DNA of 64,000 nucleotides from Anaeramoeba ignava BMAN (taxonomy: Eukaryota; Protista; Anaeramoebae): assembly GCA_028826165.1 (NCBI GenBank), contig JAPDFW010000065.1, positions 124,001-188,000 of the forward strand. The letters run 5' to 3'. The notes beneath the pieces are model-generated. The model made no database searches. It worked only from the letters and a program-made list of their open reading frames with translations, and had not been told where the DNA came from. Both the position numbers and the translations under genes were made by a program. Shown here in pieces: positions 6,001-48,842 of this stretch. Within the stretch, counting starts at the first letter, position 1. Every line of letters begins with the position of its first letter.

Positions 6001-9000
6001 GCACAAGAAACAAAACTATGCCATAAATCAATTTTTTTCATAGAATCTTGAGTATTAAATTTAGATTGATATTTTGAATTTAATTCATTTTCCAAAGTCG
6101 TTATTTGTTTAAAAAACTATTTTTCAAATTTTAAATTTTAAATTTTAATTTTGAAATTTTAAATTTTAAATTTTGATTTTGATTTTCACATGATAAAATA
6201 AAGAAGAGAATTGATCATTATCTAATTCAAGTTTTGGTAATAATTGGGAAAAACAATTCAAAAATAAAAGTGTTTGCGAACTATCATCACTTGTAAATAG
6301 ACTCTCAAAAGTTATTGAGATTTCAGAGGTTTTTTGAGTAAGCTTTTTTTTTTGATTTGTTATTATTATTATTATTATTAAAAAAAAATCAATAAAATTA
6401 TTAAATACTTGGTTAACTGAAAGAATCTCTGTTGTTCTATAAATGCATTTTGGAATGATTTCTGGGAAAAATTTCTTAAATTGAGAAAGAGAAGATGAAG
6501 CTATAAAAATATATCAAAATTTTATATCAAATTTAGAGAAAATATACAGAGTTAATTAATTATATATTTTTATTTTTGAGTATTTATTAAATAAAAAATT
6601 ACCTTCATTTGGATTTGAAATGAATTGGAAAATAGAATCCATTTTTTGTAATAATTGGAATGTTTTCTTTCTAATTGGAGGATATGGATAAGCAGCGAAA
6701 AACAATAAACTTGAATCAATATCACTTAAACTAACATTTACTTTTTCACCAAGTAAATCTTTATGGAGAGAAATTAACGATTGAGAAGGAATTTTTAATT
6801 GAGGAGATATTCCTGTTTTTTTCTTGGATTCTTTAATAATGAAAATCCATTCATCAATTAATACTTCTAAAATGTTTAATCCTTTGAGTATTTCTGGTAA
6901 AATGATTGGAATTCGAATTAAATTTTGAGCATAAACATAAATTAATAAAATTTGGAAATCTGGGTTGTTTAAAAGCTTTTTGAGTTTTGTTATGGAAGAT
7001 CTTGAAATCTTTCCATCAAGATGTAATGTTAATTGGCTAATTATTGAAAAGATGTTTTGGGGTAAAATTTCTGAGACACATCGAATACAATTTCGGAGAA
7101 TTCTTGTTTCGATTATTTGATTTTCTTTGATAAGATCTAAAAATAAAATGAAATAAAAAGAAAAAATTTGGATTAAGAATAGTTGAATAATTATTTAAAG
7201 TGATAAAAGTACCTGAAAGTTCTTTTGTTTGAGAATAACTTAACAAGTTTCCATAGAGTGAAATGTAATTCAAAAGTATTTTTTCAATTTCTGGTAAAAT
7301 AGGTTTAAATAAATCTTGAGAATTAAGTAAGGTTAATTGATCATTCTGATTTTGTGATGAAAGTAGACGAAGAAAAGAATATAAAGCTTGAGTTCCAATA
7401 TAACGTTTTTCTATCATTTCTGAACGTAATAAGCTCAATATAATATTTTCCAAAACAAAATTTGGATCAAATTTTGCATAAGTTTTGAGGAAATAATCCA
7501 GAATTTTAAAGTCACGAATCTGGTTAAATTGATAAGGTTTTGAATAATGGAAAAGAGATGCAATGATTTGTTTGATTTTGTTTTGAGCACTAAGACGATC
7601 TGAAGAACTAGAAATAATTTTGGAGCCAAGATCAACTAAGCATTTAATACCGGTTTTCATAGTTTTTTTATTATTTCTTAAATCAATTGCTTTTTCAAGT
7701 AGCTCTTCGTAGTGATTATTAAAAATTTCATCTGAAAAAACTGCAATTTGTGTTAAAAAATTTGTTAAAGATTCTTCCTCTTTTGATTTTGTGAAAATTT
7801 TTTTGGAATTGACGAATGCTAAGGTGAGCATTTGTGATAATTCTTGTTTTAATTCAAGGATTTCTGTGTTTGGAATTTTGTATAAAATTTTAGAAATAGC
7901 CATTATTTGATTAATATAATATTTGTTTTTTTTCTTTTGGGAAAATTTATCAATATATTTTTGTAAAAATTTAAGGGATTTTTTTGCGTTTTGTTCAGAA
8001 TTAAATGGGAGTTTTAAATATCCTAAGCTATGAATCCAAACTTCTATTTTATTTTCTTTGATTTCGAAATTGAGTGAGAAGTAAGAATCAATTAAATCCA
8101 AGTCAGTTATGCAAAGTTGTTCTAAAATTTGAATTGATAATTTTCTTAAGAATCTTTTGTTTATAATAGTTTGATCATGTGACCATTGAGTTCCAAATAT
8201 TTCGTATGTTTCGATTATATAAGATACTGAAAATTGAAGGATATCTTGAAGGTATTCTGTAGTTAAATATGTAGAATTTTGGTTTATAATTATTTGAATA
8301 GATTTTGCGAAAATGGAATCGATAAAAAGCTAAAAAATAAAAAAATTAGAAACAAAAAATATAAATAAAAATTTAAAAATTAAACCTTTTTAGAATTTGT
8401 CCAAAGTCTCATTTCTTTTGTTTCCGATTTTCTATTTTAATTTTATAAATTAATTTATATTTATATTTATATTTATATTTATATTTATATTTATATTTAT
8501 ATTTATATTTATATTTATATTTATATTTATATTTATATTTATATTTATATTTATATTTATATTTATATTTATTTATATTTATATTTATATTTATATTTAT
8601 ATTTATATTTATATTTATATTTTTATTTTTATATTTATATTTATATTTATATTTATATTTATATTTATATTTATATTTATATTTATATTTATATTTATAT
8701 TTATATTTATATTTATATTTATATTTATATTTATATTTATATTTATATTTATATTTATATTTATATTTATATTTATATTTATATTTATATTTATGATTTA
8801 TATTTATATTTATATTTATATTTATATTTATATTTTATATTTATATTTATATTTATATTTATAATTATATTTATATTTATATTTATATTTATATTGTATT
8901 TATATTTATATTTATATTTATATTTATATTTATATTTATATTTATATTTTATTTTATATATTTATATTTTATATTTATTATTTATATTTATATTTATGTT

Positions 9001-17003: not shown

Positions 17004-17708
17004 ATGTCTGTTAATAATCAATATATTGAAAATTTACAAAATCAATTAAAACAATTAGGATGTTATGTTGAATCTGAATGGATCACATTGAAATTAAATC
17101 AAATAATAATACAAAAAACAAGAACAATATTAAATGAAGAAGAAGAAATATTAAAATTAATAATATCAGAATTTTTAGACACGGATTTAAAAAAAATAGG
17201 GACAGGATGTTTGCCAGCAAATATATCAACAATGCACAAGCAAACAATAGAAAATAAATGTATTGTTCAAGTTGAAGAAATGATAAATTTTGGAGAACCT
17301 CATGAAAAAAGAATGAAAGAATCTAAATTGAGAATGTTTAAATTTTGGTTAACAGATGGAAAACAAGATGTTTATGCAATGGAATATAGAAAAATTAATG
17401 ATTTTTTAATTGATGATAATTTTAAAAGGCCTGGAATGAAAATTGTTATTCAAAATGTTTTTGTTAGAAGAGGTTTGTTGTTATTATCTCCTGAAAATGT
17501 ATCTGTTTTGGGTGGTTGTGTTCCAGAAATGCTCAAAGAAAGAAATGAAGAATTGAATCAAAATCCAAATCAAAATCCAAATCAAAATCCAAATCAAAAT
17601 CCAAATCAAAATCCAAATCAAAATTCAAATCAAAATCAAAATCAAAATCAAAATCAAAATCAAAATCAAAATCAAAATCAAAATCAAAATCAAAATCAAA
17701 AAAATTAA
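17004..17708 (+). CDS. RMI1: RMI1-like protein (N-terminal helical region and OB fold only) with (NQ)n tail
   Basis: FLDTDL..GCLP, VQVEEMINFG, RMFKFWLTDG..AMEYRKI..PGMKI..VRRGLLLLSPENVSVLGG match the RMI1_N OB fold, which TDRD3 also has. Confidence 0.75.
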   Translation: MSVNNQYIENLQNQLKQLGCYVESEWITLKLNQIIIQKTRTILNEEEEILKLIISEFLDTDLKKIGTGCLPANISTMHKQTIENKCIVQVEEMINFGEPHEKRMKESKLRMFKFWLTDGKQDVYAMEYRKINDFLIDDNFKRPGMKIVIQNVFVRRGLLLLSPENVSVLGGCVPEMLKERNEELNQNPNQNPNQNPNQNPNQNPNQNSNQNQNQNQNQNQNQNQNQNQNQNQKN

Positions 17709-23696: not shown

Positions 23697-25175
23697 TTAA
23701 ATGAAATAAGTTTCAAGTTCATCAACAACCCATTTCTCAGAACCTCCTAAATAATTTGTAGCTTCATTTGTTCTATATTCAATTCCTTCAGGTAGATGAT
23801 AACTATATCCAAAATTTGATCTTCCATTCTTTAACTTAGATTTTAATTGAAAATCAGAACCAAATCCAAAAAATGGACCAAAACCTGAATAATTATACCA
23901 CATTGAATGGTTTTCTTCTCCTTTTCTAATTGGAAATTTATCCGGTTTTCTATTATTCTTATCATTTCTTAATGAAAAAATAAATGCATTTGAATCAATA
24001 ATATATCCATTTGGATTATCTTGATAACTTTCATCCCATTTTGATTTATCATTTGTAAATCCAACTTGAGTAAATCCTCCAAAAATAAAATTATCTTCTG
24101 TTTTGATAATAACTAATGTTTTCCCTTTATTATCACAAATATAATGCCAATTTTTACAAGAAAATCCATCTTTTTTTGCTGAAAATCCTTTTTTCATTTT
24201 GGAAAAGAATTCATCATCATTTATCCATTCTTTTAATTTCTCGTAATGCTCTTTTGTTTGAATAGTTCTTGATTTAAATCTTGGTTTGAAAATTAATGAA
24301 TTTTGATTTTGATTTTCTTTTTCAATAAATTGAATTAATTCTTTTTGATCATTTTCTTCATTTTGAAGTTTTTGAAATTGAATTAATTTTTCTGAAATTT
24401 GATTTGGAATTAAATCTTCTTTTAAAATATCTTCAAGTTCTTGTTTTGAAAAATCAATAAATCTGATCTTTTGGATAATATTTGAAATTTGATCTTGTAT
24501 TTTTTCTTTTTCTTCTTTTTCAAGTTTTTCATTTTCTTTGACTTGATTAACGTTTGATTTATGTTTTCCCCATTTGATTATTGATTGGAACATTTTAAAT
24601 TCATTTAAAAACATAAAATCATTTGATAAAATTGAATTTAAATGATTTTCTTCAAGTTCAAGAAAAAATGGAGTTTTGATAAATTTATTAAAATTATCTA
24701 AAATAAGTTGATAAGAAGAATCAAATAATTCATTGAAGTTCATTGATTCAGATAATTTAAGAACATCAACAATAGTTTCAAATTGTAAATTGTTTTTGAT
24801 AAAATTTAAAGAAATTTCAATTAATTCATCAATTAAATATTTTGATGAAAAAATTAAAATTTCAACTGAATTTTCTAAATTAATTTCAATTTTTCCTGAA
24901 TAAAGATAATTTAAAATTGAAGATAGAACTGAACTTGAAAAATCTTGAAGAATTAATTTATTTTCTTGATATTCTTTCATTTTTGAATGGAAAAGAGATT
25001 TAAAATAATGACTTCTTGAAGAAAGAATTGATTTATGAGTTTTAAATGAAGTTTGATTTTGTTCACAAATTATTTCAAAATCGAAATAACTTTCTTCATT
25101 TTCAGTTTGGTTTTGATTTTGAAATAAATTTTCTAAATCATTTGAAAGTTTTTCTAAATTTAAATAATTTTCCAT
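23697..25175 (-). CDS. BTB/POZ-BACK-TLDc protein (copy A, intronless)
   Basis: BTB: DFEI..FKTHKSILSSRSHYFKSLF..ILNYLYSG. BACK: EFKMFQSIIKWG..IRF. TLDc: KDGFS..DNKGKTLVIIKT..FIFGGFT..D.NAFIFSL..GPFFG..ELETY. Confidence 0.9.
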   Translation of the reverse strand: MENYLNLEKLSNDLENLFQNQNQTENEESYFDFEIICEQNQTSFKTHKSILSSRSHYFKSLFHSKMKEYQENKLILQDFSSSVLSSILNYLYSGKIEINLENSVEILIFSSKYLIDELIEISLNFIKNNLQFETIVDVLKLSESMNFNELFDSSYQLILDNFNKFIKTPFFLELEENHLNSILSNDFMFLNEFKMFQSIIKWGKHKSNVNQVKENEKLEKEEKEKIQDQISNIIQKIRFIDFSKQELEDILKEDLIPNQISEKLIQFQKLQNEENDQKELIQFIEKENQNQNSLIFKPRFKSRTIQTKEHYEKLKEWINDDEFFSKMKKGFSAKKDGFSCKNWHYICDNKGKTLVIIKTEDNFIFGGFTQVGFTNDKSKWDESYQDNPNGYIIDSNAFIFSLRNDKNNRKPDKFPIRKGEENHSMWYNYSGFGPFFGFGSDFQLKSKLKNGRSNFGYSYHLPEGIEYRTNEATNYLGGSEKWVVDELETYFI

Positions 25176-25189
25176 TTTCAATAAAATTT

Positions 25190-26320: not shown

Positions 26321-28376
26321 ATGGATAATAATAATAATAATAACCAAATTGAAAATGCAAATCAAAATGAAAATGAAAATGAAATGAAAAATTTAGAAAA
26401 AAAAGTAACAAAAAATTTAATTAAAAATTATTCAAACCTTTTAAATGGAAATTCATTTAAAGATTTTTCAATTTTTGTTGAGAATAAATCAAATCCTTTT
26501 GAAATTAAAGTTCATAAATCAATTTTATCTTCAAGATCTCCTTTTTTTAATGAGTTTTTAAGAAGAAAAAACGATATTGATAAGATTTTTTTAAATCAAT
26601 TTAATAAAAAAGAAATGGAATCAATTTTAAGTTATATTTATTATGGAAATATTTCTTTTGAGAATCAAGAAAATCTTATTCAATTATTGGAAATTTCAAT
26701 TTATTTTAAATTAAATTTATTGAAAGAAATTATTCAAAAAAAAATTTCAAATTCAATTAATTATTCAAATTTTTTCCAATTTTTTTTCCAAAATCGAAAT
26801 TTAAAACTAAATGAAATTGAAATAAAATGTTTTGAATTAATAAATCAAAATTTTTCCCAAATTCAGAATAATGAGAATTTATTCAATTTAACTAAAGAAG
26901 AAATTATCAAATTTATTCAATTTAAACAAGAAAAAAAAGAAATTTTTCAATTTGATTTTTTTCAATTTTTGGATAATTGGATTAAAAAAAGGAATGAAAG
27001 ATTAAAAGGAAAGAAATATGAACACAAAATGAATGCAAAGAAAAGATTATTTCATTCTTTTTTTTCATTATTTGATAAAGATTCAATTTCAAAAAAAGAT
27101 TTTGATAAATTAAAACAATTTGATATTTTTCTTCCAAATTCTTTTTTAATTAATTTTGAAAGAACTATTTTTGAAATTAAAGATAAAGAAAAAGAAAAGA
27201 AAATTAAAGAAAATCAAACAAAAATTAAAAAAAAAGATAAGAAAATTGAAGAAAAAGAAAAGAAAATTAAAAGAAGAGATAAAAGAATTAAATCATTTCA
27301 ATCCGAAACTCAAAATTTAAAATCAGAAAATCAAGATTTGAAATTAGAAAATGAAAAGAATAAAAAAGAAAACAAAGAGATTCAAGAAAAACTCAAAAAA
27401 GAAAATAAAAAGAAAGATAAAATTCTCAAACAAAAAGATAAAGAAATCCAAAATCTTAAATTATCATTTGAGAAAGAAATTGAAAAAGAAAATCAAAAAG
27501 AAGAATCAAATCAAAATCAAAATCAAAATCAAAATCAAAATCAAAATCAAAATCAAAATCAAAAAGAAGAATCAAATCAAAAACAAAACCAAAATAAATT
27601 GTTAAAGATTTTTTCAGATTCAGAAATTATTAAAGATATTGAATATGTTAAGAAATTAAAAGAATGGATAAATGATAATGATTTTTTTTCTAAAATGAAA
27701 AAAGGATATTCAGCAAAAAGAGATGGATTTAATTGTAAAAATTGGCATTATATTTGTAATAATAAAGGAAAAGCATTAGTTATTATCAAAACAAAAGATA
27801 ATTTTATTTTTGGAGGATTTACTCAAGTTGGATTTACAAATGATAAATCAAAATGGAGAGAAGAAGATAGAAATGATAATTGGGGATTTATTCCAGATTC
27901 AAATGCATTTATTTTTTCATTAAGAAATGATAAAGAAGATAGAAACCCTGCAAAGTTTACAATTAAACAAGGAAAAGAAGAATATGCAATTTATTATCAT
28001 TTAAATGATGGTCCAACTTTTGGAAGTAAATATAAATAATTTATATTTAATAAATATTTATTATTATAATTAAAATAAAATTAATAAATAATACAAAATA
28101 TTAATATAATAAATAATATTATTATATCAATTTAAAATAAAATAAATTTTAAATTAAATTATTATTAATTATTATTAAAATTAATTATTTATCTTTATTA
28201 AAATATTTATAGGTGATATTCATTTAAAATTTGATTTACAATCTGGTCGTTCAAATTTTGGTAATAGTTATAATCTACCGAATGGAATTAAATATTATAC
28301 AAATGAAGCTCAAAGTTATTTAGCTGGTTCTTTTGATAAATGGGTTGTTGATGAACTTGAAACTTATTTCATTTAA
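26321..28376 (+). CDS. BTB/POZ-coiled-coil-TLDc protein (copy B); intron 28026-28212
   Basis: BTB: DFSIFV..IKVHKSILSSRSPFF..ILSYIYYG. TLDc is completed by exon 2: SDIHLKFDLQSGRSNFGNSYNLPNG..YLAGSFDKWVVDELETYFI*. Confidence 0.9.
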
Positions 28377-32154: not shown

Positions 32155-32246
32155 GAACAAAAGAAACAAGATTTTCTAAATGAAAAATTTTTTTTTTGAT
32201 TTTTTTTTTTTCATTTTTTTTTTCATTTTTTTTTTCATTTTTCAAA

Positions 32247-34604
32247 ATGAATCAATTACTTTCTTTGTTAATCATTTTATCTTTATTTTTTTCAACTCTT
32301 TCAATTTCAGAAAAGAAAGCCTTAAAAAAATTATTAGATCCAAACAGATTTCCATTTCAAACAGAAAAACCAACAAAAAAAACACCTTTTTTTTTTTATG
32401 AACCATTTTATAAAGAAGAAGTAAATGAATCAATAAACAAATGGATATTTCCAAGTTCAACAAACAAATCAACATTTCGAATCGACAAAACAGAACAAAA
32501 ACACCGAGTTTTAGACGATTATGCGCTTATATACACACCCCAAAATTTAGAGCCTCAAAAAATAATAAGAAAATTTGAAAAACCGTTTAATCCAAAAAAT
32601 AAAGGAATTATTTTTCAATTTGAAATGACAGTTCCTTATATAACTCCCTGTTCAAATGTGACATTTAAATTTTTGACTGAGCCAATTTCGAGCAATAAAA
32701 CAGACAATATTTCTTCTTGGGTCTTTTCTTTTGGTCCTGAAGTCTGTGGAAATCAAGCTCGAAAAACGAATATGAAAATTAGATTTTATTCACCAAAAGA
32801 AAAGAAATGGAAAATTGCCAAATTTAATCCAGGAATTTATCCGCGAATAGATGAATTGCCGCATTTATTCACGCTTATATTTGATGAGGATAATAATTTC
32901 TATCTTATTTTGGATCAAATTATTGAATATCGTGGAAATCTTGTGGAAGCCAATCCTGAATGGGAAGTAAAATTGGAATCAGATTTAAGATCAAAATATG
33001 AAAATAAATTTGAATCTGAAGTAGATGCGATATTGATACAAGAATTTCGAGGAAAATCAGAATTGAAATCAAAATTGGAATCAGAATTAAAATCAAAATT
33101 AAAATCAAAATTGGAATCAGAATTAAAATCAAAATTGGAATCAGAATTAAAATTAAATTCAGAATTAAATTCAGAATCAAAATTGGAATTGGAATCAAAA
33201 TTAAAATCAGAATTGGAATCGGAATTTGAATCACAACTAAAATCACAATTACAATCAGAATTCAACTTGCAAATGAGACCACAAATTGAGAAAGAATTAC
33301 GATCAAGATACAAATTGGAACTAGAATCAAAAATGGAATCATATTCAAATTTTGCGCCAAAAATACAAGAACCCAAAACAATACCCGATCCAAAATCAAC
33401 CAAACCAAAGAATTGGGATGATCGGGAAGAATTGATAATCGAGCCCAATTCACAACAAAAAAAGCTATACATAGATTCCCCAGATTATTTCATTCCCGAG
33501 AATTGGAATGAAGATATTCCAGAATTTATTCCTGATCCAACAAAGCAAAAACCAAGTGAATGGGTTGATAAAAGAGATGGAACTTGGAAGCAGCCCATGA
33601 TTCCAAACCCAGAATGCGCGAAGTATTCGGGATGCGGGAAACTCAAAGTTCCGGAGATCAGGAATAAGGATTATATGCCTGAACCAGTCAAAATCAAGAA
33701 CCCAAATTTCAACGGAACTTGGAATCCAAGTAGAATTCCGAATCCAAAATATTTCCGAAATGAACATCCTGTTGATGGACAAATTATTTATGGATTTGAA
33801 ATTGAAATTCAATCGCAAAATTTTCCGATTTACATCGACAATATTTTGCTGAGTTATTTTGATCATACAAGATATGCATTTGAAGAAGCACGAAATACAT
33901 GGGGTTTAAAAATGAAATCAAAGTGGGATTTTCTACTTGATTTTTATCAATTAAGATACAAAAGACGATATTTTCCTCGCGATTTTCTTTATACTCAAGA
34001 AGAAATTTTGAATAATCATCCATTTGAAGTCGAATTTTTTTTTATTGATTCTCCATCTTTTTCTTACACTTCTTTACTTAATGATTTTACTGATTTTTTA
34101 AGGTCTATCCCCCCAAAACTTAATTATTTCTTTGCACATCATTTGTATGAATATCTTGTTTCTTTGCTTGTTATTACACTCTCTATTTTGCTCTTTATTT
34201 TTAAAAAATTCCAAAAGGAAAAACAAACTGCTCAAAAAGAACTTCAATATGTTAAAATTATTAACCAATATTTCAAAGAACAAAAAGAAATTAATCAAAA
34301 ATCAAACCAAAAGAGAAAGAGAATTCCAAAAAAGATTGAAATTTTAAATGAAAAAAACAATGAAAATCAAAATGGAAATGAAAATGAAAATGAAAATGAA
34401 AATGAAAATCAAAATGAAAATGAAAATGAAAAAGAAAAAGAAAATGAAAATCAAAATCAAAATCAAAATGAAAATCAAAATGAAAATCAAAATGAAAATG
34501 AAAATCAAAATGAAAATCAAAATGAAAAAGAAAATCAAAATCAAAATCAAAATCAAAATCAAAATGAAAATCAAAATCAAAATCAAAATGAAAATCTAAA
34601 TTAA
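32247..34604 (+). CDS. Divergent calnexin-like type I membrane protein
   Basis: Signal peptide MNQLLSLLIILSLFFSTLS; FGPEVCG; HLFTLI; P-domain repeats IPDPKSTKPKNWD, IPDPTKQKPSEW..DGTWKQPMIPNPEC..GCG, IKNPNFNGTW..IPNPKYF; C-terminal TM helix and acidic tail. True ATG is 32247, after the initiator motif. Confidence 0.85.
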   Translation: MNQLLSLLIILSLFFSTLSISEKKALKKLLDPNRFPFQTEKPTKKTPFFFYEPFYKEEVNESINKWIFPSSTNKSTFRIDKTEQKHRVLDDYALIYTPQNLEPQKIIRKFEKPFNPKNKGIIFQFEMTVPYITPCSNVTFKFLTEPISSNKTDNISSWVFSFGPEVCGNQARKTNMKIRFYSPKEKKWKIAKFNPGIYPRIDELPHLFTLIFDEDNNFYLILDQIIEYRGNLVEANPEWEVKLESDLRSKYENKFESEVDAILIQEFRGKSELKSKLESELKSKLKSKLESELKSKLESELKLNSELNSESKLELESKLKSELESEFESQLKSQLQSEFNLQMRPQIEKELRSRYKLELESKMESYSNFAPKIQEPKTIPDPKSTKPKNWDDREELIIEPNSQQKKLYIDSPDYFIPENWNEDIPEFIPDPTKQKPSEWVDKRDGTWKQPMIPNPECAKYSGCGKLKVPEIRNKDYMPEPVKIKNPNFNGTWNPSRIPNPKYFRNEHPVDGQIIYGFEIEIQSQNFPIYIDNILLSYFDHTRYAFEEARNTWGLKMKSKWDFLLDFYQLRYKRRYFPRDFLYTQEEILNNHPFEVEFFFIDSPSFSYTSLLNDFTDFLRSIPPKLNYFFAHHLYEYLVSLLVITLSILLFIFKKFQKEKQTAQKELQYVKIINQYFKEQKEINQKSNQKRKRIPKKIEILNEKNNENQNGNENENENENENQNENENEKEKENENQNQNQNENQNENQNENENQNENQNEKENQNQNQNQNQNENQNQNQNENLN

Positions 34605-35760
34605 AATCAAAATCAAAATCAAATTAAAATCAAATTGAAAATGAAAATCAAAATCAAAATCAAAATCAAAATCAAAATTAAAATCAAAATCAAAATTAAA
34701 ATCAAAATCAAAATCAAAATCAAAATGAAAATTGAAAATCAAAATCAAAATTAAAATCAAAATCAAAATTAAAATCAAAATCAAAATTAAAATCAAAATT
34801 AAAATCAAAATCAAAATTAAAATCAAAATCAAAATCAAAATCAAAATGAAAATTGAAAATCAAAATCAATTTATAAACCAAAATCAAAATTAAAATCAAA
34901 ATCAAAATTAAAATCAAAATTAAAATCAAAATCAAAATTAAAATCAAAATCAAAATCAAAATCAAAATGAAAATTGAAAATCAAAATCAAAATTAAAATC
35001 AAAATCAAAATTAAAATCAAAATCAAAATTAAAATCAAAATTAAAATCAAAATCAAAATTAAAATCAAAATCAAAATCAAAATCTAAATCAAAATCAAAA
35101 TTAAAATCAAATTGAAAATCAAAATTAAATTGAAAATTAAAATCAAAATCAAAATCAAATTCAAATTCAAAATCAAAATCAAATTCAAAATCAAAATGAA
35201 AATCAAAATCAAAATCAAAATCAAAATCAAAATCAAAATCAAAATGAAAATGAAAATGAAAATGAAAATGAAAATGAAAAAGAAAATCAAAATGAAAATC
35301 AAAATCAAAATGAAAATCAAAATCAAAATCAAATTGAAAATCAAAATCAAAATCAAAATGAAAATCAAAATCAAATTGAAAATTAAAATCAAAATAAAAA
35401 TCAAAATCAAAATCAAAATCAAAATGAAAATCAAAATCAAAATGAAAATCAAAATCAAAATCAAAATCAAAATCAAAATGAAAATCAAAATCAAAATCAA
35501 AATTAAAATCAAAATCTAAATTAAATTAAAATCAAATTGAAAATCAAAATTAAAATCAAAATTAAAATCAAAATCAAAATTAAAATCAAAATGAAAATCA
35601 AAATCAAAATGAAAATTAAAATTGAAAATTAAAATCAAAATCAAATTCAAAATTAAAATCAAAATCTAAATTAAATTAAAATCAAAATGAAAATCAAAAT
35701 TAAAATCAAAATTAAAATCAAAATGAAAATCTAAATTAAAATCAAAATGAAAATCAAAAT
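34605..35760. repeat. (AAAATC/AAAATT/AAAATG)n hexamer satellite
   Basis: Continues the NQ/NE coding repeat of the calnexin tail into intergenic DNA. Confidence 0.9.
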
Positions 35761-35870
35761 TTTCTCTTTTAAAAGGAAATAAAATTTTACAAAATTATTT
35801 TTTTCATTTTTTTCCTTTTATTTTTAAATTAAATTAAATTGAATTAAATTTATTAAATTTATTTATTAAA

Positions 35871-36557
35871 ATGTTGATTTATATTCGAAGTTTAACTGGT
35901 CAAATAATAACACTTGAAGTTGAATTAAGTGATACAATTAAAGAAATTAAAGAAAAAGTTGGAGAAAAACAAGATTGGGATCCAGATTGTTTATTATTAA
36001 TTTTTGCAGGAAAATTTTTAGAAAATGGAAAAACTCTTAATGATTATAATATTCGAAATGAATGCAATATTCATGCTATTCAATTTCTTGATAAAATTGT
36101 TTATATTACTATTTTTCATCCAATTAGAAAAGTTTCATTGCTTATTCGAAATACTTCCAAACAAAATTCACAAATTCCAGTTTTTGAAAATACACTTCAA
36201 GATATTTTAACAAAAATATCAAAAATGAAATATGAAATTGAAGGAACAAGTTTAATTTATGAAGGAAAAAGACTTGAATATAATAAAAAATTATCTTATT
36301 ATCAAAATTCAAATGAAAATCCTTCACTTAATATTTTTACATTAATTAAAGTTAATATTAAAAAATTAAACCAAGAAAATAAATATTATTATGTTTCTCC
36401 TGATGAATCAATTAAAGATTTAAAAATCCAAATTGAAAAAGTTGAAAATATTCCAAATCAAAATCAAATTTTATTATTTAATAATGAAATTTTAGAAAAT
36501 GAAAAACAATTTAATTATTTTATTCAAACAAAAAGAAGATTATGGGAAAATTATTAA
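35871..36557 (+). CDS. Tri-ubiquitin-like protein, copy 1 (extra A near 36530 alters the C-terminus)
   Basis: UBL1 aligns without gaps to ubiquitin (ITLEVE.SDTI..K.K..LIFAGK.LE.G.TL.DYNI). UBL2 has LIYEGKRLE..LSYY. UBL3 has VSPDESIKDLKIQIEKVENIP..Q.LLF. No Gly-Gly. Confidence 0.85.
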   Translation: MLIYIRSLTGQIITLEVELSDTIKEIKEKVGEKQDWDPDCLLLIFAGKFLENGKTLNDYNIRNECNIHAIQFLDKIVYITIFHPIRKVSLLIRNTSKQNSQIPVFENTLQDILTKISKMKYEIEGTSLIYEGKRLEYNKKLSYYQNSNENPSLNIFTLIKVNIKKLNQENKYYYVSPDESIKDLKIQIEKVENIPNQNQILLFNNEILENEKQFNYFIQTKRRLWENY

Positions 36558-36714
36558 TTTATTTCTTAAATTTTAATTTCTAATTTTCTTTTCCAAAAAT
36601 TCAAAAATTAAATTTTTCATTTTTTTATTTTCATTTTTTTCCTTTTATTTTTTAAATTAAATTGAATTAAATTGAATTAAATTGAATTAAATTAAATTAA
36701 ATTTATTTATTAAA

Positions 36715-37419
36715 ATGTGGCTTTATATTCGAACTTTATTTGGTCAAACAATAACACTTGAAGTTGAATCAAGTGATACAATTAAAGAAATTAAAGAAAA
36801 AATTGGAGAAAAACAAGATTGGGATCCAGATTGTTTAATATTAATTTTTACAGGAAAATTTTTAGAAAATGAAAAAACTCTTAATGATTATAATATTAGA
36901 CATGATTATACTATTCATGTTATTCAATCTCTTGATAAAATTGTTTATATTACTATTTTTCATCCAATTAGAAAAGTTTCATTGCTTATTAGAGGTATTT
37001 TCAATCCAAATACACAAATTCCAGTTTTTGAAAATACACTTCAAGATATTTTAACAAAAATATCAAAAAGTAAATATGAAATTGAAGGAACAAGTTTAAT
37101 TTATGAAGGAAAAAGACTTGAATATAATAAAAAATTATCTTATTATCAAAAATCAAATGAAAATCCTTCACTTGATATTTTTTCATTAATTAAAGTTAAT
37201 ATTAAAAAATTAAACCAAGAAAATAAATATTATTATGTTTCTCCTAATGAATCAATTAAAGATTTAAAAATCCAAATTGAAAAAGTTGAAAATATTCCAA
37301 ATCAAAATCAAATTTTATTATTTAATAATGAAATTTTAGAAAATGAAAAACAATTTAATCATTTTATTCAAACAAAAGAAGATTATGGGAAAATTATTAA
37401 TTTATTTCTTAAATTTTAA
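36715..37419 (+). CDS. Tri-ubiquitin-like protein, copy 2
   Basis: 234 aa, intronless, three UBL repeats, ends INLFLKF. Confidence 0.9.
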   Translation: MWLYIRTLFGQTITLEVESSDTIKEIKEKIGEKQDWDPDCLILIFTGKFLENEKTLNDYNIRHDYTIHVIQSLDKIVYITIFHPIRKVSLLIRGIFNPNTQIPVFENTLQDILTKISKSKYEIEGTSLIYEGKRLEYNKKLSYYQKSNENPSLDIFSLIKVNIKKLNQENKYYYVSPNESIKDLKIQIEKVENIPNQNQILLFNNEILENEKQFNHFIQTKEDYGKIINLFLKF

Positions 37420-37536
37420 TTTCTAATTTTCTTTTCCAAAAAATTCAAAAATTAAATTTTTCATTTTTATTTTCATTTTTTTCCTTTTATTTTTTAAATT
37501 AAATTGAATTAAATTAAATTAAATTTATTTATTAAA

Positions 37537-38241
37537 ATGTGGCTTTATATTCGAACTTTATTTGGTCAAACAATAACACTTGAAGTTGAATCAAGTGATA
37601 CAATTAAAGAAATTAAAGAAAAAATTGGAGAAAAACAAGATTGGGATCCAGATTGTTTAATATTAATTTTTACAGGAAAATTTTTAGAAAATGAAAAAAC
37701 TCTTAATGATTATAATATTAGACATGATTACACTATTCATGTTATTCAATCTCTTGATAAAATTGTTTATATTACTATTTTTCATCCAATTAGAAAAGTT
37801 TCATTGCTTATTAGAGGTATTTTCAATCCAAATACACAAATTCCAGTTTTTGAAAATACACTTCAAGATATTTTAACAAAAATATCTAAAAGTAAATATG
37901 AAATTGAAGGAACAAGTTTAATTTATGAAGGAAAAAGACTTGAATATAATAAAAAATTATCTTATTATCAAAATTCAAATGAAAATCCTTCACTTAATAT
38001 TTTTTCATTAATTAAAGTTAATATTAAAAAATTAAACCAAGAAAATAAATATTATTATGTTTCTCCTAATGAATCAATTCAAGATTTAAAAATCCAAATT
38101 GAAAAAGTTGAAAATATTCCAAATCAAAATCAAATATTATTATTTAATAATGAAATTTTAGAAAATGAAAAACAATTTAATCATTTTATTCAAACAAAAG
38201 AAGATTATGGGAAAATTATTAATTTATTTCTTAAATTTTAA
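37537..38241 (+). CDS. Tri-ubiquitin-like protein, copy 3 (near-identical to copy 2)
   Basis: 234 aa. The N-terminal half is identical to copy 2 in protein sequence. Confidence 0.9.
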   Translation: MWLYIRTLFGQTITLEVESSDTIKEIKEKIGEKQDWDPDCLILIFTGKFLENEKTLNDYNIRHDYTIHVIQSLDKIVYITIFHPIRKVSLLIRGIFNPNTQIPVFENTLQDILTKISKSKYEIEGTSLIYEGKRLEYNKKLSYYQNSNENPSLNIFSLIKVNIKKLNQENKYYYVSPNESIQDLKIQIEKVENIPNQNQILLFNNEILENEKQFNHFIQTKEDYGKIINLFLKF

Positions 38242-38375
38242 TTTCTAATTTTCTTTTCCAAAAATTCAAAAATTAAATTTTTCATTTTTTTATTTTCATT
38301 TTTTTCCTTTTATTTTTTAAATTAAATTGAATTAAATTGAATTAAATTGAATTAAATTGAATTAAATTTATTAAA

Positions 38376-39080
38376 ATGTTGATTGTTATTCGAAGTTTAT
38401 CTGGTCGAACAATAACAGTTGAAGTTGAATCAAATGATACAATTAAGCAAGTAAAAGAAAAAATTGGAGAAAAACAAGATTGGGATCCAGATTGTTTAAT
38501 ATTAGTTTTTGCAGGAAAAATTTTAGAGAATGAAAAAACTCCTTATGATTATAATATCACAAAAAATTCTACTATTCATGTTATTCAATTTCCTGATAAA
38601 GTTGTTTATATTAATATTTTTCATCCAATTAGAAAAATTTTTCCTTTTTACCAAACAAACTTGGGTCCAGATTCACAAATTCCAGTTTTTGAAAATACAC
38701 TTCAAGATATTTTAACAAAAATATCAACAATGAAATATGAAATTGAAGGAACAAGTTTAATTTATGAAGGAAAAAGACTTGAATATAATAAAAAATTATC
38801 TTATTATCAAAAATCAAATGAAAATCCTTCACTTAATATTTTTACATTAATTAAAGTTAATATTAAAAAATTAAATGAAGAAAATAAATATTATTATGTT
38901 TCTCCTAATGAATCAATTCAAGATTTAAAAATTCAAATTGAAAAAGTTGAAAATATTCCAAATCAAAATCAAATATTATTATTTAATAATGAAATTTTAG
39001 AAAATGAAAAACAATTTAATCATTTTATTCAAAAAAAAGAAGATTATGGGAAAATTATTAATTTATTTCTTAAATTTTAA
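38376..39080 (+). CDS. Tri-ubiquitin-like protein, copy 4
   Basis: 234 aa, divergent N-terminal half, conserved C-terminal half. Confidence 0.9.
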   Translation: MLIVIRSLSGRTITVEVESNDTIKQVKEKIGEKQDWDPDCLILVFAGKILENEKTPYDYNITKNSTIHVIQFPDKVVYINIFHPIRKIFPFYQTNLGPDSQIPVFENTLQDILTKISTMKYEIEGTSLIYEGKRLEYNKKLSYYQKSNENPSLNIFTLIKVNIKKLNEENKYYYVSPNESIQDLKIQIEKVENIPNQNQILLFNNEILENEKQFNHFIQKKEDYGKIINLFLKF

Positions 39081-39192
39081 TTTCTAATTTTCTTTTCCAA
39101 AAATTCAAAAATTAAATTTTTCATTTTTTTATTTTCATTTTTATTTTTATTTTTTAAATTAAATTGAATTAAATTGAATTAAATTTATTAAA

Positions 39193-39897
39193 ATGTTGAT
39201 TTATATTCGAAGTTTATCTGGTCGAACAATAACACTTGAAGTTGAATCAAATGAAATGATTAAAGAAATTAAAGAAAAAGTTGGAGAAAAACAAGATTGG
39301 GATTCAGATTGTTTATTATTAGTTTTTGCAGGAAAAATTTTAGAGAATGAAAAAAACCTTAATGATTATGGAATTCAAAAAGAATCTACTTTTTATTTTA
39401 TTCAATTTATTGATAAAGTTATTTATATTAATATTTTTCATCCAATTAGAAAAGTTTTACCACTTGTTCGAAATACTTCAAATTCAAATATGCAAATTCC
39501 AGTTTTTGAAAATACACTTCAAGATATTTTAACAAAAATATCAACAATGAAATATGAAATTGAAGGAACAAGTTTAATTTATGAAGGAAAAAGACTTGAA
39601 TATAATAAAAAATTATCTTATTATCAAAAATCAAATGAAAATCCTTCACTTAATATTTTTACATTAATTAAAGTTAATATTAAAAAATTAAACCAAGAAA
39701 ATAAATATTATTATGTTTCTCCTGATGAATCAATTCAAGATTTAAAAATTCAAATTGAAAAAGTTGAAAATATTTCAAATCAAAATCAAATTTTATTATT
39801 TAATAATGAAATTTTAGAAAATGAAAAACAATTTAACCATTTTATTCAAACAAAAGAAGATTATGGAAAAATTATTAATTTATTTCTTAAATTTTAA
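39193..39897 (+). CDS. Tri-ubiquitin-like protein, copy 5
   Basis: 234 aa. DYGIQKEST is the most ubiquitin-like version of this segment. Confidence 0.9.
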   Translation: MLIYIRSLSGRTITLEVESNEMIKEIKEKVGEKQDWDSDCLLLVFAGKILENEKNLNDYGIQKESTFYFIQFIDKVIYINIFHPIRKVLPLVRNTSNSNMQIPVFENTLQDILTKISTMKYEIEGTSLIYEGKRLEYNKKLSYYQKSNENPSLNIFTLIKVNIKKLNQENKYYYVSPDESIQDLKIQIEKVENISNQNQILLFNNEILENEKQFNHFIQTKEDYGKIINLFLKF

Positions 39898-40105
39898 TTT
39901 CTAATTTTCTTTTCCAAAAATTCAAAAATTAAAAAAAGGAATTTGATCAATTTCAGAAAAAAAATTTTTTTTTAATTTTAATTAAAATTGATTTGAAATT
40001 AACTTTTTCAACATTTTTGATGCAAAAATAATTGGATAAGTTTAATCCAAATCAAAAAGAAGAAAAAAAAAAAGAAAATAGAAAAAAAGAAAAAATTGAT
40101 GAAAA

Positions 40106-46441: not shown

Positions 46442-48842
46442 TTAAATGAAATAAGTTTCAAGTTCATCAACAACCCATTTATCTAAAAGAACCAGCTAAA
46501 TAACTTTCAGCTTCTTTTGTTTTATTTTTCAATTCCATTCGGTAGATTATAACTATTACCAAAATTTGAATGACCTTTTTGTAAATTATCATTTAAATGA
46601 ATATCACCTATAAATATTTTAATAAAAATAAATAATTAATTTTAATAATAATTAATAATAATTTAATTTGAAATTTATTTTATTTTAAATTTAAATAATA
46701 ATATTATTTATTATATTAATATTTTGGATTATTTATTAATTTAATTTTAATTTTATAATTTATTAAATAATATTATTTAATTAATAATAATTTAATTTGA
46801 AATTTATTTTATTTTAAATTAAAATAATAAATATTTATTAAATATAATTTTTATTTTTAATTTAATTTTAATAAAGATTAAAATAAAATTTAATTTTAAT
46901 AAAAATAAATAATTAATTTAATTTAAAATTTATTTTATTTTAAATTAAAATAATAATAATATTATTTATTATATTAATATTTTGGATTATTTATTAATTT
47001 AATTTTAATTATAATAATAAATATTTATTAAATATAATTTATTTACTCTCTATTTTAATAAAGATAAATAATTAATTTTAATAATAATTAATAATAATTT
47101 AATTTAAAATTTATTTTATTTTAAATTTAAATAATAATATTATTTATTATATTAATATTTTAGATTATTTATTAATTTAATTTTAATTATAATAATAAAT
47201 ATTTATTAAATCAAAATTAATTATTTATATTTACTTCCTCCAAAAGTTGGACCATATCTTAAAGCATATTCAATTGCATATTGTTCTTCTCCTTTTTTAA
47301 TTGTAAATTTATCTGGTATTCTATCTCCTTTATCATTTCTTAATGAAAAAATAAATGCATTTGAATCAATAATATATCCATTTGGATTATCTTGATAACT
47401 TTCATTCCATTTTGATTTATCATTTGTCCATCCAACTTGAGTAAAACCTCCAAAAATAAAATTATCTTTTGTTTTGATAATAACTAATGTTTTTCCTTTA
47501 TCATCAACTGCTTTATGCCAATTTTGAGAATCAAATCCATCTCTTTTTGCTGAAAATCCTTTTTTCATTTTAGAAAAAAAATCATTATCATTTATCCATT
47601 CTTGTAATTTCTTAGCATATTCAATATCTTGAACAATTTCTGAATCTGAAAAAATCTTTTGTAATTCCATTAATTCAAATTTAGATTTGAGTTCTTCTTT
47701 TTGATTTTGATTTTCTTTGATTTCCATTTTGATTTTCATTTTGATTTTGATTTCCATTTTGATTTTCATTTTCTTTGATTTTTGATTTTCTTTTTCAATA
47801 TCTTTCTTGATAATTTAAGATTTTGAATTTCTTTTCTCCATTTTCATCTTTCTTTTTTTTTCCATTTCTCTTGGTTTTTCTTTTTCTTTATTTTTCTAAT
47901 TTTCTTTCTTCCATTTCTAATTCAAATGATTTCTCTTTTTTATCTTCAATTTCTTTTTCTTTGTTTTCAATTTTCTTTTTGATTATCTTGAATAACTTTG
48001 TTTTGAATATCAACTAAAAAGATTTAGGAAAAATCAAATTGTTTTAATTTATCAAAATCTTGTTTTGAAATTGAATCTTTATCAAATAATGAAAAAAAAG
48101 AATGAAATAATCTTTTCTTTGCAATTCCCTTTTCTTTTTCTTTTTCTTTCTTTCCTTTTAATCTTTGATTTCTTTTTTCAATCCAATTATTTAAAAATTG
48201 AAAAAAATCAAATTGAAAAATTTCTTTTTTTTCTTGTTTAAATTGAATAAATTTGATAATTTCTTCTTTAGTTAAATTGAATAAATTTTCATTATTCTGA
48301 ATTTGGGAAAAATTTTGATTTATTAATTCAAAACATTTTATTTCAATTTCATTTGAATTTAAATTTCGATTTTGGAATAAAAATTGGAAAAAATTTGAAT
48401 AATTAATTGAATTTGAAATTTTTTTTTGAATAATTTCTTTCAATAAATTTAATTTAAAATAAATTGAAATTTCCAATAATTGAATAAGATTTTCTTGATT
48501 CACAAAAGAAATATTTCCATAATAAATATAACTCAAAATTGATTCCATTTCTTTTTTATTAAATTGATTTAAAGAAATAGAATTAATATCGTTTTGTCCT
48601 TTTAAAAACTCATTAAAAAAAGGAGATCTTGAAGATAAAATTGATTTATGAACTTTAATTTCAAAAGGATTTGATTTATTCTCAACAAAAATTGAAAAAT
48701 CTTTAAATGAATTTCCATTTAAAATATTTGAATAATCTTTAATTAAATTTTTTGTTACTTTTTTTTCTAAATTTTTCATTTCATTTTCATTTTGATTTTG
48801 ATTTGCATTTTCAATTTGGTTATTATTATTGTTGTTATCCAT
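46442..48842 (-). pseudogene. BTB-coiled-coil-TLDc (copy C), frame-disrupted at ~47770-48030; pseudogene or consensus error
   Basis: The first ~270 aa are nearly identical to copy B. TLDc has the same intron position (46608-47234) and ends ELETYFI*. Several indels and stops occur in the coiled-coil linker. Confidence 0.75.

Follow-up and report, generated by a model that had tools for sequence, protein, structure and literature searches.

Ubiquitin is among the most conserved proteins of eukaryotes. Genes which repeat its fold in tandem without the terminal Gly-Gly, and in which one part of the protein differs strongly from copy to copy, raise the question whether the differing part is shaped by selection or is free to drift. 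Such genes were found in a stretch of Anaeramoeba ignava BMAN DNA of 64,000 nucleotides (hereafter the window; C66:124001-188000 in the 42.8-Mb, 147-contig genome). The encoded proteins consist of three ubiquitin-like (UBL) domains and the genes are called tri-UBL genes here. They belong to a species-specific, recently amplified family without Gly-Gly, in which a fast-changing head keeps the fold and an I44-type patch, and the tail is constrained and homogenised by gene conversion. On the basis of sequence, about an even chance is given to the view that this is a young, A. ignava-specific family of non-conjugatable proteins which evolves as diversified heads on a constant tail, with the members as putative binders.

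A six-frame search of the genome revealed nine copies of the family. Five form an array in the window and the other four are all situated on contig C71, where d1 and d2 make up an intact tandem pair on the minus strand (872423-873124 and 871627-872328) and e1 and e2 lie at 309496 and 316227. Six of the nine copies are intact, while c1, e1 and e2 carry a 1-nt frameshift. The genes and spacers of the array are as follows.

35790-35870, + strand: region upstream of c1; it contains TTTTCATTTTT motifs and (TTAAA/TTGAA)n, and its last letters ahead of the ATG are ...TTTATTAAA
35871-36576, + strand: c1, with a frameshifted 3' end; the assembled open reading frame (ORF) is 35871-36557, 228 amino acids
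36577-36714, + strand: spacer c1-c2, which differs from the others in microsatellite and homopolymer lengths and is otherwise near-identical to them
36715-37419, + strand: c2, intact tri-UBL gene, 234 amino acids
37420-37536, + strand: spacer c2-c3
37537-38241, + strand: c3, intact, 234 amino acids
38242-38375, + strand: spacer c3-c4
38376-39080, + strand: c4, intact, 234 amino acids, with the most divergent cassette, IFPFYQTNLGPDS
39081-39192, + strand: spacer c4-c5
39193-39897, + strand: c5, intact, 234 amino acids

According to the ORF list, the five intronless genes are arranged head to tail on the plus strand and span 35871-39897, with start-to-start periods of 844, 822, 839 and 817 bp. 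A preliminary description of this DNA had read five units of about 820-845 bp, each with its own initiator and an intronless ORF of three UBLs, and these ORFs were found; the lengths it gave, 234 amino acids and 228 for c1 as assembled, are exact. c1 is shorter because of one surplus A in a homopolymer around 36529-36534, which puts its last 14 codons out of frame; the family C-terminus is still encoded, unbroken, one frame on, up to 36576. Residues 101-234 are near-identical among the copies, with few variable positions, and residues 1-100 are divergent. The spacers are near-identical as well, nearly all their differences being in the lengths of (TTAAA/TTGAA)n and of homopolymers, in line with the invariance that had been claimed for the spacers and the C-terminal part. 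The proposed layout of variable head and constant tail recurs at all three loci. On C71, e1 and e2 have a common 1-nt G insertion, due to which they are annotated as 171-aa proteins; it is located outside any homopolymer, and a complete UBL3 follows in the next frame.

Uniform spacers and tails, or the copy number itself, could in principle result from collapsed or over-polished long reads. The A. ignava nuclear genome (80.65% A+T) was assembled from Nanopore and Illumina data (PMC11550330), and the frameshift of c1 is a homopolymer length difference of the kind typical of nanopore error. However, the copies are separated by many fixed head substitutions and by scattered tail sites, the microsatellites in the spacers differ in length, the head/tail pattern is repeated at two loci on another contig, and the G insertion shared by e1 and e2 is not in a homopolymer. 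An assembly or polishing artefact is given almost no credence.

Ahead of the start codon, all nine copies possess TTTTCATTTTT motifs and a core which reads GAATTAAATTTATT...AAAATG; this promoter- or 5'UTR-like core is thus common to the three loci. In an exact-pattern search, which matches six of the nine copies, this core was found outside the family only in minisatellites and as an isolated match at C1:647492. The minisatellites are composed of a 22-24-bp unit, GAATTAAATTTATTTAAAAAATG, which has the motif found directly upstream of the tri-UBL start codons, and are located at C70:167.8-170.8 kb, C77:121.2-123.7 kb, C81:149.3-150.3 kb and C86:284.8-285.0 kb.

Domain organization was analyzed with Pfam and by structure prediction. 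The domains are given for c3, and the offsets are equal in all copies.

37537-37761, + strand: UBL1 of c3 (aa 1-75), from the ubiquitin alignment and Pfam
37762-38007, + strand: UBL2 of c3 (about aa 76-157), a beta-grasp of very divergent sequence (Pfam 19 bits, predicted local distance difference test score (pLDDT) 57-74)
38008-38238, + strand: UBL3 of c3 (about aa 158-234; Pfam 34.7 bits, pLDDT 82-92)

PF00240 matches three stretches per copy (E 1e-28 to 1e-34; 99-117 bits for the whole protein), and over the full 234 residues only ubiquitin-type Pfam families were found. In separate scans against PF00240, with its gathering cut-off of 25.4 bits, UBL1 (80.1 bits) and UBL3 scored above the cut-off; UBL2 alone was below it and matched only profile positions 23-58. 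With an alignment of eight paralogues, AlphaFold2 folded UBL1 alone, and residues 71-234 were unusable (pLDDT <50). It was rerun with a 71-sequence alignment consisting of the paralogues and three-unit segments of HMMER matches, which gave a mean pLDDT of 78, with UBL1 at about 90. This model shows the secondary structure order of a beta-grasp in the three units, although it is not clear-cut for UBL2, whose strand-strand-helix-strand-strand-strand order is of modest confidence. Strand beta5 of UBL2 continues directly into beta1 of UBL3, and the chain stops at beta5 of UBL3 without a flexible tail.

No GG dipeptide is present in any of the nine proteins, and the absence of LRGG from the junctions and the end, noted earlier from the letters, holds. 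UBL1 ends in ...IQSLDK, compared with ...LRLRGG in A. ignava ubiquitin. The junctions between the UBLs read ...LDK-IVY... and ...IFSLIKVNI..., and the protein ends in ...KIINLFLKF. In ubiquitin numbering, position 72 of UBL1 is F or S, 74 is D, 75 is K and 76 is I or V, from where the chain continues into UBL2. R42, R72, R74 and G75-G76 of ubiquitin are thus replaced, while the L8/I44/H68/V70 patch and the core are kept, as are K27, K29 and K48. Type I modifiers possess a flexible C-terminal tail with Arg72/Arg74-type residues for E1 recognition. The tri-UBL proteins have neither a C-terminal Gly-Gly nor such a tail. They also lack the near-identical 76-residue RLRGG repeats of polyubiquitin genes, their three units being mutually unlike, and they contain UBLs only, without the second domain, such as UBA, found in proteins of Rad23/Dsk2 type. 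A true modifier, processed in a non-canonical way and conjugated via a non-Gly C-terminus, has a very slim chance. Nothing in the sequence speaks for it and it is listed only since UBL1 is about 50% identical to ubiquitin; the lack of any GG, the replacement of R72, R74, G75 and G76 and a modelled chain which ends flush with beta5, with no free tail, all argue against it.

The top Foldseek matches of the model in the Protein Data Bank were linear tetra- and tri-ubiquitin (7eb9, 7yui, 5b83, 5h07; E about 1e-22, 29-30% identity). Linear di-ubiquitin came lower, then di-ubiquitin Affilins, ISG15, the tandem UBLs of OASL and the UBLs of USP7. Linear (Met1-linked) or unprocessed polyubiquitin thus resembles the family most in structure, with head-to-tail beta-grasp units and a first unit which aligns residue for residue with UBL1. 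The tri-UBL proteins differ from it in that their three units are unlike one another and RLRGG is absent from all junctions and from the end, which leaves deubiquitinases no cleavage site. ISG15 and FAT10 possess an exposed C-terminal Gly-Gly and are conjugated. The family resembles them as small, fast-evolving proteins of tandem UBLs only (ISG15 Foldseek E about 1e-10 to 1e-11) but has neither the GG nor a C-terminal tail. Non-conjugatable UBLs which dock non-covalently are found in Rad60/Esc2/NIP45 and in type-II UBL proteins (Rad23, Dsk2). A Pfam Rad60-SLD match (E 1e-12 to 1e-16) and the name 'rad23', given automatically to one paralogue in NCBI, recall this group. However, its members carry other domains or long N-terminal regions, whereas the tri-UBL proteins carry UBLs only, and the Rad60-SLD score is far below that of ubiquitin. 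The tandem UBLs of OASL are likewise not conjugated and are reported to act as polyubiquitin mimics (PMC6019448). The di-UBL of chicken OASL (7sbi) was matched at E 3.8e-11; OASL has two UBLs on an OAS-like domain and about 14% identity, whereas the tri-UBL proteins have three and their mimicry is only putative.

Relatives were searched inside and outside the genome. The genuine ubiquitin of A. ignava is canonical, with identical repeats ending in RLRGG, none of which is found in the tri-UBL genes; UBL1 aligns with it residue for residue at the identity given above. A word-index protein search returned A. ignava members only, followed by unrelated polyubiquitin-like proteins of about 30% identity. 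When 1.84 billion representatives were searched exhaustively by HMMER, with the tail (aa 76-234) as query, the family stood alone at high score (297 bits) and no orthologue was found outside the species. The other matches were long multi-UBL or polyubiquitin-type proteins with 23-35% identity and 3-17 matching stretches, and the tail matches such poly-UBL proteins across the UBL2-UBL3 boundary. Those sampled had names such as 'ubiquitin C' and 'polyubiquitin-like' and contained PF00240-type repeats only. A literature search gave no paper tying Anaeramoeba to a tri-UBL family, and ubiquitin is not discussed in the genome paper (PMC11550330). Its orthogroup table places the C71 paralogues M0811_01361 and M0811_01366 in one pan-metamonad orthogroup with other ubiquitin-domain genes. 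Five consecutive tags in that orthogroup, M0811_05981-05985, may be the c1-c5 array.

The genome contains further unusual ubiquitin-like genes. GG-less tandem poly-UBL genes encoding 294-604 amino acids are present at C59:368500-375500 and C70:304500-307600. Their first unit is a near-canonical ubiquitin (MQIFVKTLTGKTITIEI...) which ends in RLAPP in place of RLRGG, and several divergent UBLs follow. A locus at C56:495000-504999 contains, at its positions 20-1210 on the minus strand, a gene for a GG-less protein of 397 amino acids with three collinear UBLs in the first ~235 residues and ~160 more residues. The same locus has two minus-strand genes (3324-4238 and 8041-8940) in which a ubiquitin ending in TLRRGD, without GG, is fused to a Cys-rich C-terminal domain. 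The C59/C70 and C56 poly-UBL families are collinear with the tri-UBL proteins over three units at 30-31% identity, but they are no closer to them than foreign polyubiquitin-like proteins and have other lengths and numbers of units. A variant polyubiquitin (NFQIFVKTLTGRTITLDV...LRLRGGN) of 2-4 repeats is found at C65:16800-53200, C147 and C74; in it the GG is kept and an extra Asn stands between repeats.

The distribution of variation within the genes was analyzed in the nine copies. Mean pairwise nucleotide divergence is 0-7% over codons 101-234, reaching up to 13% at codons 111-120 across loci. It peaks at codons 61-70 (28-32%) and at codons 91-100 (35-44%). The second peak falls in a cassette of 13 codons (aa 88-100) between IFHPIRK and QIPVFENT, whose length and invariant flanks had been described exactly, and the four cassette sequences quoted were as read.

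36132-36170, + strand: cassette of c1, between IFHPIRK and QIPVFENT
36976-37014, + strand: cassette of c2, at the same aa 88-100 offset
37798-37836, + strand: cassette of c3; in the model, strand beta2 of UBL2 and the next loop
38637-38675, + strand: cassette of c4, which matches the other cassettes at about 50% of nucleotides and has identical flanks
39454-39492, + strand: cassette of c5, at the same aa 88-100 offset

The flanks show zero differences in the nine copies and the cassette length is always 13 codons. c2 and c3 have one cassette sequence in common. In the model, the cassette comprises strand beta2 of UBL2 (88-91) and the following loop, and residues 94-102 have pLDDT <50. The divergent cassette of c4 was considered as a compensated frameshift, and no shifted register raised the identity; no donor for it was found elsewhere in the genome within 3 mismatches.

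Variation in UBL1 was mapped by one-to-one alignment with ubiquitin and with what we take to be the ubiquitin core positions. The core positions swap only among I, L, V and F. L8 is invariant, position 44 is I, V or F, 68 is H or Y and 70 is I or V. Hence the L8/I44/H68/V70 face, which the preliminary description took as hypervariable, is conserved and only its periphery varies. Positions 36-41, 45, 47-48, 50-52, 54 and 58-59 are invariant or nearly so. R42 and Q49 are replaced by hydrophobic residues in all copies, and the changes at 42-49 are conservative hydrophobic swaps. Non-conservative variation was found at 9, 11, 12, 14, 18-21, 25, 35, 53-57, 62-66 and 71-73, at presumed surface positions as judged from the alignment. 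At positions 62-66, which belong to the most variable ones, the nine copies show 3-4 states, while positions 2, 4 and 6 have two states each. The clusters proposed earlier, at UBL1 residues 2-12, 42-49 and 62-73 and in the cassette, therefore stand in part. Both divergence peaks agree with them, but 14-21, 25, 35 and 53-57 also vary.

The regions named in that proposal overlap with those randomised in engineered ubiquitin variants (UbVs), and this statement about the literature is correct (PMC12155308, PMC3961674). In the UbV library, residues 2-14, 42-49 and 62-76 are randomised (PMC12155308), and in Affilin, residues 2, 4, 6 and 62-66, which were picked as mutation-tolerant (PMC3961674). Variable positions are enriched only weakly in the UbV regions (17 of 36, compared with 11 of 40 elsewhere; Fisher p=0.097; Mann-Whitney p=0.028). 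UbVs and Affilins are also similar in using ubiquitin or linear di-ubiquitin as a scaffold with a varied surface, and the Affilins 8pf0 and 8peq were among the Foldseek matches. On the other hand, the tri-UBL family conserves L8, I44, H68 and V70 and has only two states at 2, 4 and 6, and its strongest variation is in the strand-plus-loop cassette of UBL2, to which nothing in those libraries corresponds. Since the engineers chose mutation-tolerant positions, selection cannot be read from the resemblance; the overlap fits drift as well as it fits selection.

To what extent tail constancy reflects constraint was addressed by the gene-conversion tests which had been proposed together with selection tests. 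The pairwise homoplasy index (PHI) was significant for the whole gene (p=0.0002). Within the head it was not (p=0.52), though 41% of site pairs are incompatible, and within the tail it was also not significant. The four-gamete test was violated by 23 of 45 informative-site pairs in the tails of the window array. c3 differs from c2 by 1 nt in the head and by 5 sites in the tail; four of these five, and five of all six differences, are states present in other copies. The tails of d1 and d2 have no synonymous difference, while their heads have about 50 non-synonymous ones (about 49.5 of 57 nucleotide differences). Gene conversion accounts for part of the uniformity of tail and spacer; in addition, purifying selection acts on the tail (omega <1). 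Constancy of the tail is thus not constraint only.

Estimates of synonymous divergence by Nei-Gojobori and maximum likelihood are 2-4 times higher in the head, which could be taken as a sign that the head is older than the tail. This was rejected since codons of unchanged residues are equally quiet in both. Clean synonymous changes occur in 2 of 29 invariant-residue columns in the head and 11 of 110 in the tail, and among codon pairs with unchanged residue the counts are 8/285 and 6/519 (p=0.097). Because synonymous sites are equally quiet, the head is not demonstrably older, and its excess is specifically amino-acid-changing and patchy.

For selection analysis, a codon alignment was made from which the single extra base of c1, e1 and e2 was removed. 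Nei-Gojobori dN/dS was 1.1-3 in the head and 0.2-0.7 in the tail for most pairs, up to 1.65. The head values were not accepted as a sign of selection; a ratio of 2.2 was obtained when data were simulated at omega=1 with the fitted composition, and the naive excess over 1 is an artefact caused by 80% A+T. Among the codon models, head omega was 0.57 with GY94-F3x4, 0.35-0.45 with F61, 1.26 with F1x4 and 0.89-1.13 with MG-type models. The MG-type model fits better by about 30 log-likelihood units and places head omega at 0.91, not different from 1. Tail omega was 0.19-0.29 in per-region fits and 0.06-0.13 in joint fits, significantly below 1. Codons 1-100 change about 3-6 times faster than the tail at the protein level. 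IQ-TREE codon runs on the tail were discarded, as omega and kappa were both 1.000 in three of four models (GY+F1X4 gave omega 0.498) and likelihoods were poor. The site models were run with code of our own; for M0 it gave omega 0.57 compared with 0.56 in IQ-TREE (log-likelihood -1340.57 and -1340.66).

Site-wise tests, M7 against M8 among those suggested earlier, gave a divided answer. The head was significant with GY-F3x4 frequencies (M2a vs M1a p=0.001; M7 vs M8 p=0.0008). For M2a vs M1a in the head, p was 0.006 with MG94, 0.026 with the six intact copies, 0.069 with F61 and 0.07 without c4. The cassette block (codons 78-101) gave p=0.002-0.006, and 0.025 without c4, with about one quarter of sites at omega 5-7. 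UBL1 alone was not significant (p=0.13 and 0.28), and the tail gave p=0.017. Amino acids 62, 89, 92, 94-96 and 100 (alignment columns 63, 93, 95-97 and 101) were flagged repeatedly. The pattern is suggestive of positive selection at position 62 and at some six codons of the cassette.

The variation could also arise without any repertoire, if the proteins perform one generic UBL job with a free head surface. Relaxed constraint would then act together with concerted evolution, in which conversion homogenises stretches of high identity and is blocked by mismatches in diverged patches. Several points fit this or weigh against diversified heads as binders. The site models come from our own code, checked against IQ-TREE for M0 only, and from nine sequences. 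Head omega of about 0.9-1.0 under the best-fitting model is not different from 1, and UBL1 alone has no significant class with omega above 1; because its average omega is about 1, relaxed constraint explains UBL1 as well as selection does. The head signal weakens with F61 frequencies (p=0.069) and on removal of c4 (p=0.07). The tail, where recombination is evident, is also marginally positive in M2a (p=0.017), because of which the test may give false positives here and is not clean. Conversion signals are present. The variable positions are those known from engineering as mutation-tolerant (PMC3961674), which relaxed constraint predicts as well, and frameshifts in three of nine copies fit birth-and-death turnover. 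Other results are harder to place under relaxed constraint. The cassette block repeatedly yields omega of about 5-7 at about six codons (p=0.002-0.025), its 35-44% nucleotide divergence stands between flanks with zero differences in nine copies, its length is strictly 13 codons, and the head excess is amino-acid-changing, its clean synonymous sites being as quiet as those of the tail. Relaxed constraint with concerted evolution is a serious possibility, though short of an even chance.

The copies could also be decaying by-products of polyubiquitin, untranslated or functionless and on the way to becoming pseudogenes. The frameshifts in c1, e1 and e2 and the aberrant beta1-beta2 region of d2, with G10Q, would agree with decay. 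However, six full 234-codon ORFs persist in a genome of 80% A+T. The heads have zero stops or indels at about 40% amino-acid divergence; as about 10% of random head mutations would be stops, the ORFs are evidently maintained. The per-region fits put tail omega significantly below 1, and both the hydrophobic core and, at three loci, the promoter core are conserved. Decay to pseudogenes is held to be improbable.

A family of diversified heads on a constant tail could have arisen as follows. Head-to-tail ubiquitin repeats may have lost every Gly-Gly site, and the product would then stay one 234-residue chain of three UBLs which permanently resembles linear ubiquitin of a few units. If this origin is right, the loss of every Gly-Gly would leave no monomer release and no conjugation, and non-covalent binding only. 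The copies evolve by tandem duplication with gene conversion, and conversion leaves little variation in codons 101-234, in the spacer and in the promoter core. In the head, the fold core and the I44-type patch of UBL1 are kept and surface positions drift near the neutral rate. The UBL2-UBL3 tail together with the I44-type patch might dock on one ubiquitin-binding partner common to all paralogues, while each paralogue might gain a different second contact through the variable surface of head and cassette. The role of the heads as diversified binders is, judging from the sequences, plausible but unproven. A role of the proteins as decoys or sensors is purely inferential.

A bolder version is that the family is a natural library of uncleavable mimics of linear ubiquitin chains, the constant di-UBL tail engaging one host receptor and head and cassette being selected for different targets. 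We consider it unlikely. Candidate targets would be deubiquitinases or ubiquitin-binding effectors of sulfate-reducing symbionts, prey bacteria or viruses, or the BTB adaptors of the cell itself. Such a library, if true, would be the biological counterpart of engineered ubiquitin variants and Affilins. To our knowledge, tandem UBLs which mimic ubiquitin chains and cannot be conjugated are known only where they are appended to another domain (OASL) or have been engineered as reagents. A tri-UBL family which stands on its own and is confined to one species, with conserved patch, constant tail and fast head, would be new, and would be a tractable natural case of ubiquitin as a binding scaffold. 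The family would also add to the signs of a remodelled ubiquitin system in Anaeramoeba, which are thousands of candidate BTB matches, variant polyubiquitins and several poly-UBL families without GG. Should the head merely drift, a methodological lesson would be left, namely that 80% A+T inflates counting dN/dS: on the same data, head omega was about 1.5 by Nei-Gojobori and 0.35-1.26 by codon models.

Upstream of the array, the window contains a calreticulin-family gene (32196-34601) and a 1.4-kb hexanucleotide/18-mer microsatellite, (AAATGA/AAATCA)n, at 34346-35760. The microsatellite starts within the 3' end of the calreticulin-family ORF (32196-34604) and stops about 110 bp before c1. A LIM gene is among the other neighbours. 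At 17004-17708 on the plus strand, an ORF of 234 amino acids with a long (NQ/NP)n low-complexity tail is unrelated to the UBL family despite its equal length. Three BTB-TLDc genes are also present in the window, at 23700-25181 (-), 26321-28036 (+) and 47224-48842 (-).

BTB genes lie near all three tri-UBL loci, those on C71 being flanked by BTB-BACK and RCC1-BTB genes. BTB/POZ is massively expanded in this genome, with 3711 first-look candidates in 42.8 Mb, and all 150 of those scored exceed 75 bits. Because of this abundance, such proximity is expected by chance, and a functional linkage between tri-UBL genes and BTB genes as Cullin-3 adaptors was dropped. At C71:309496-316932, e1 and e2 flank RCC1-BTB genes, comprising three full ORFs and a partial fourth at the locus edge. 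The region looks like a segmental duplication of about 6.7 kb, and a porin_3 (VDAC-like) gene is situated after e2.

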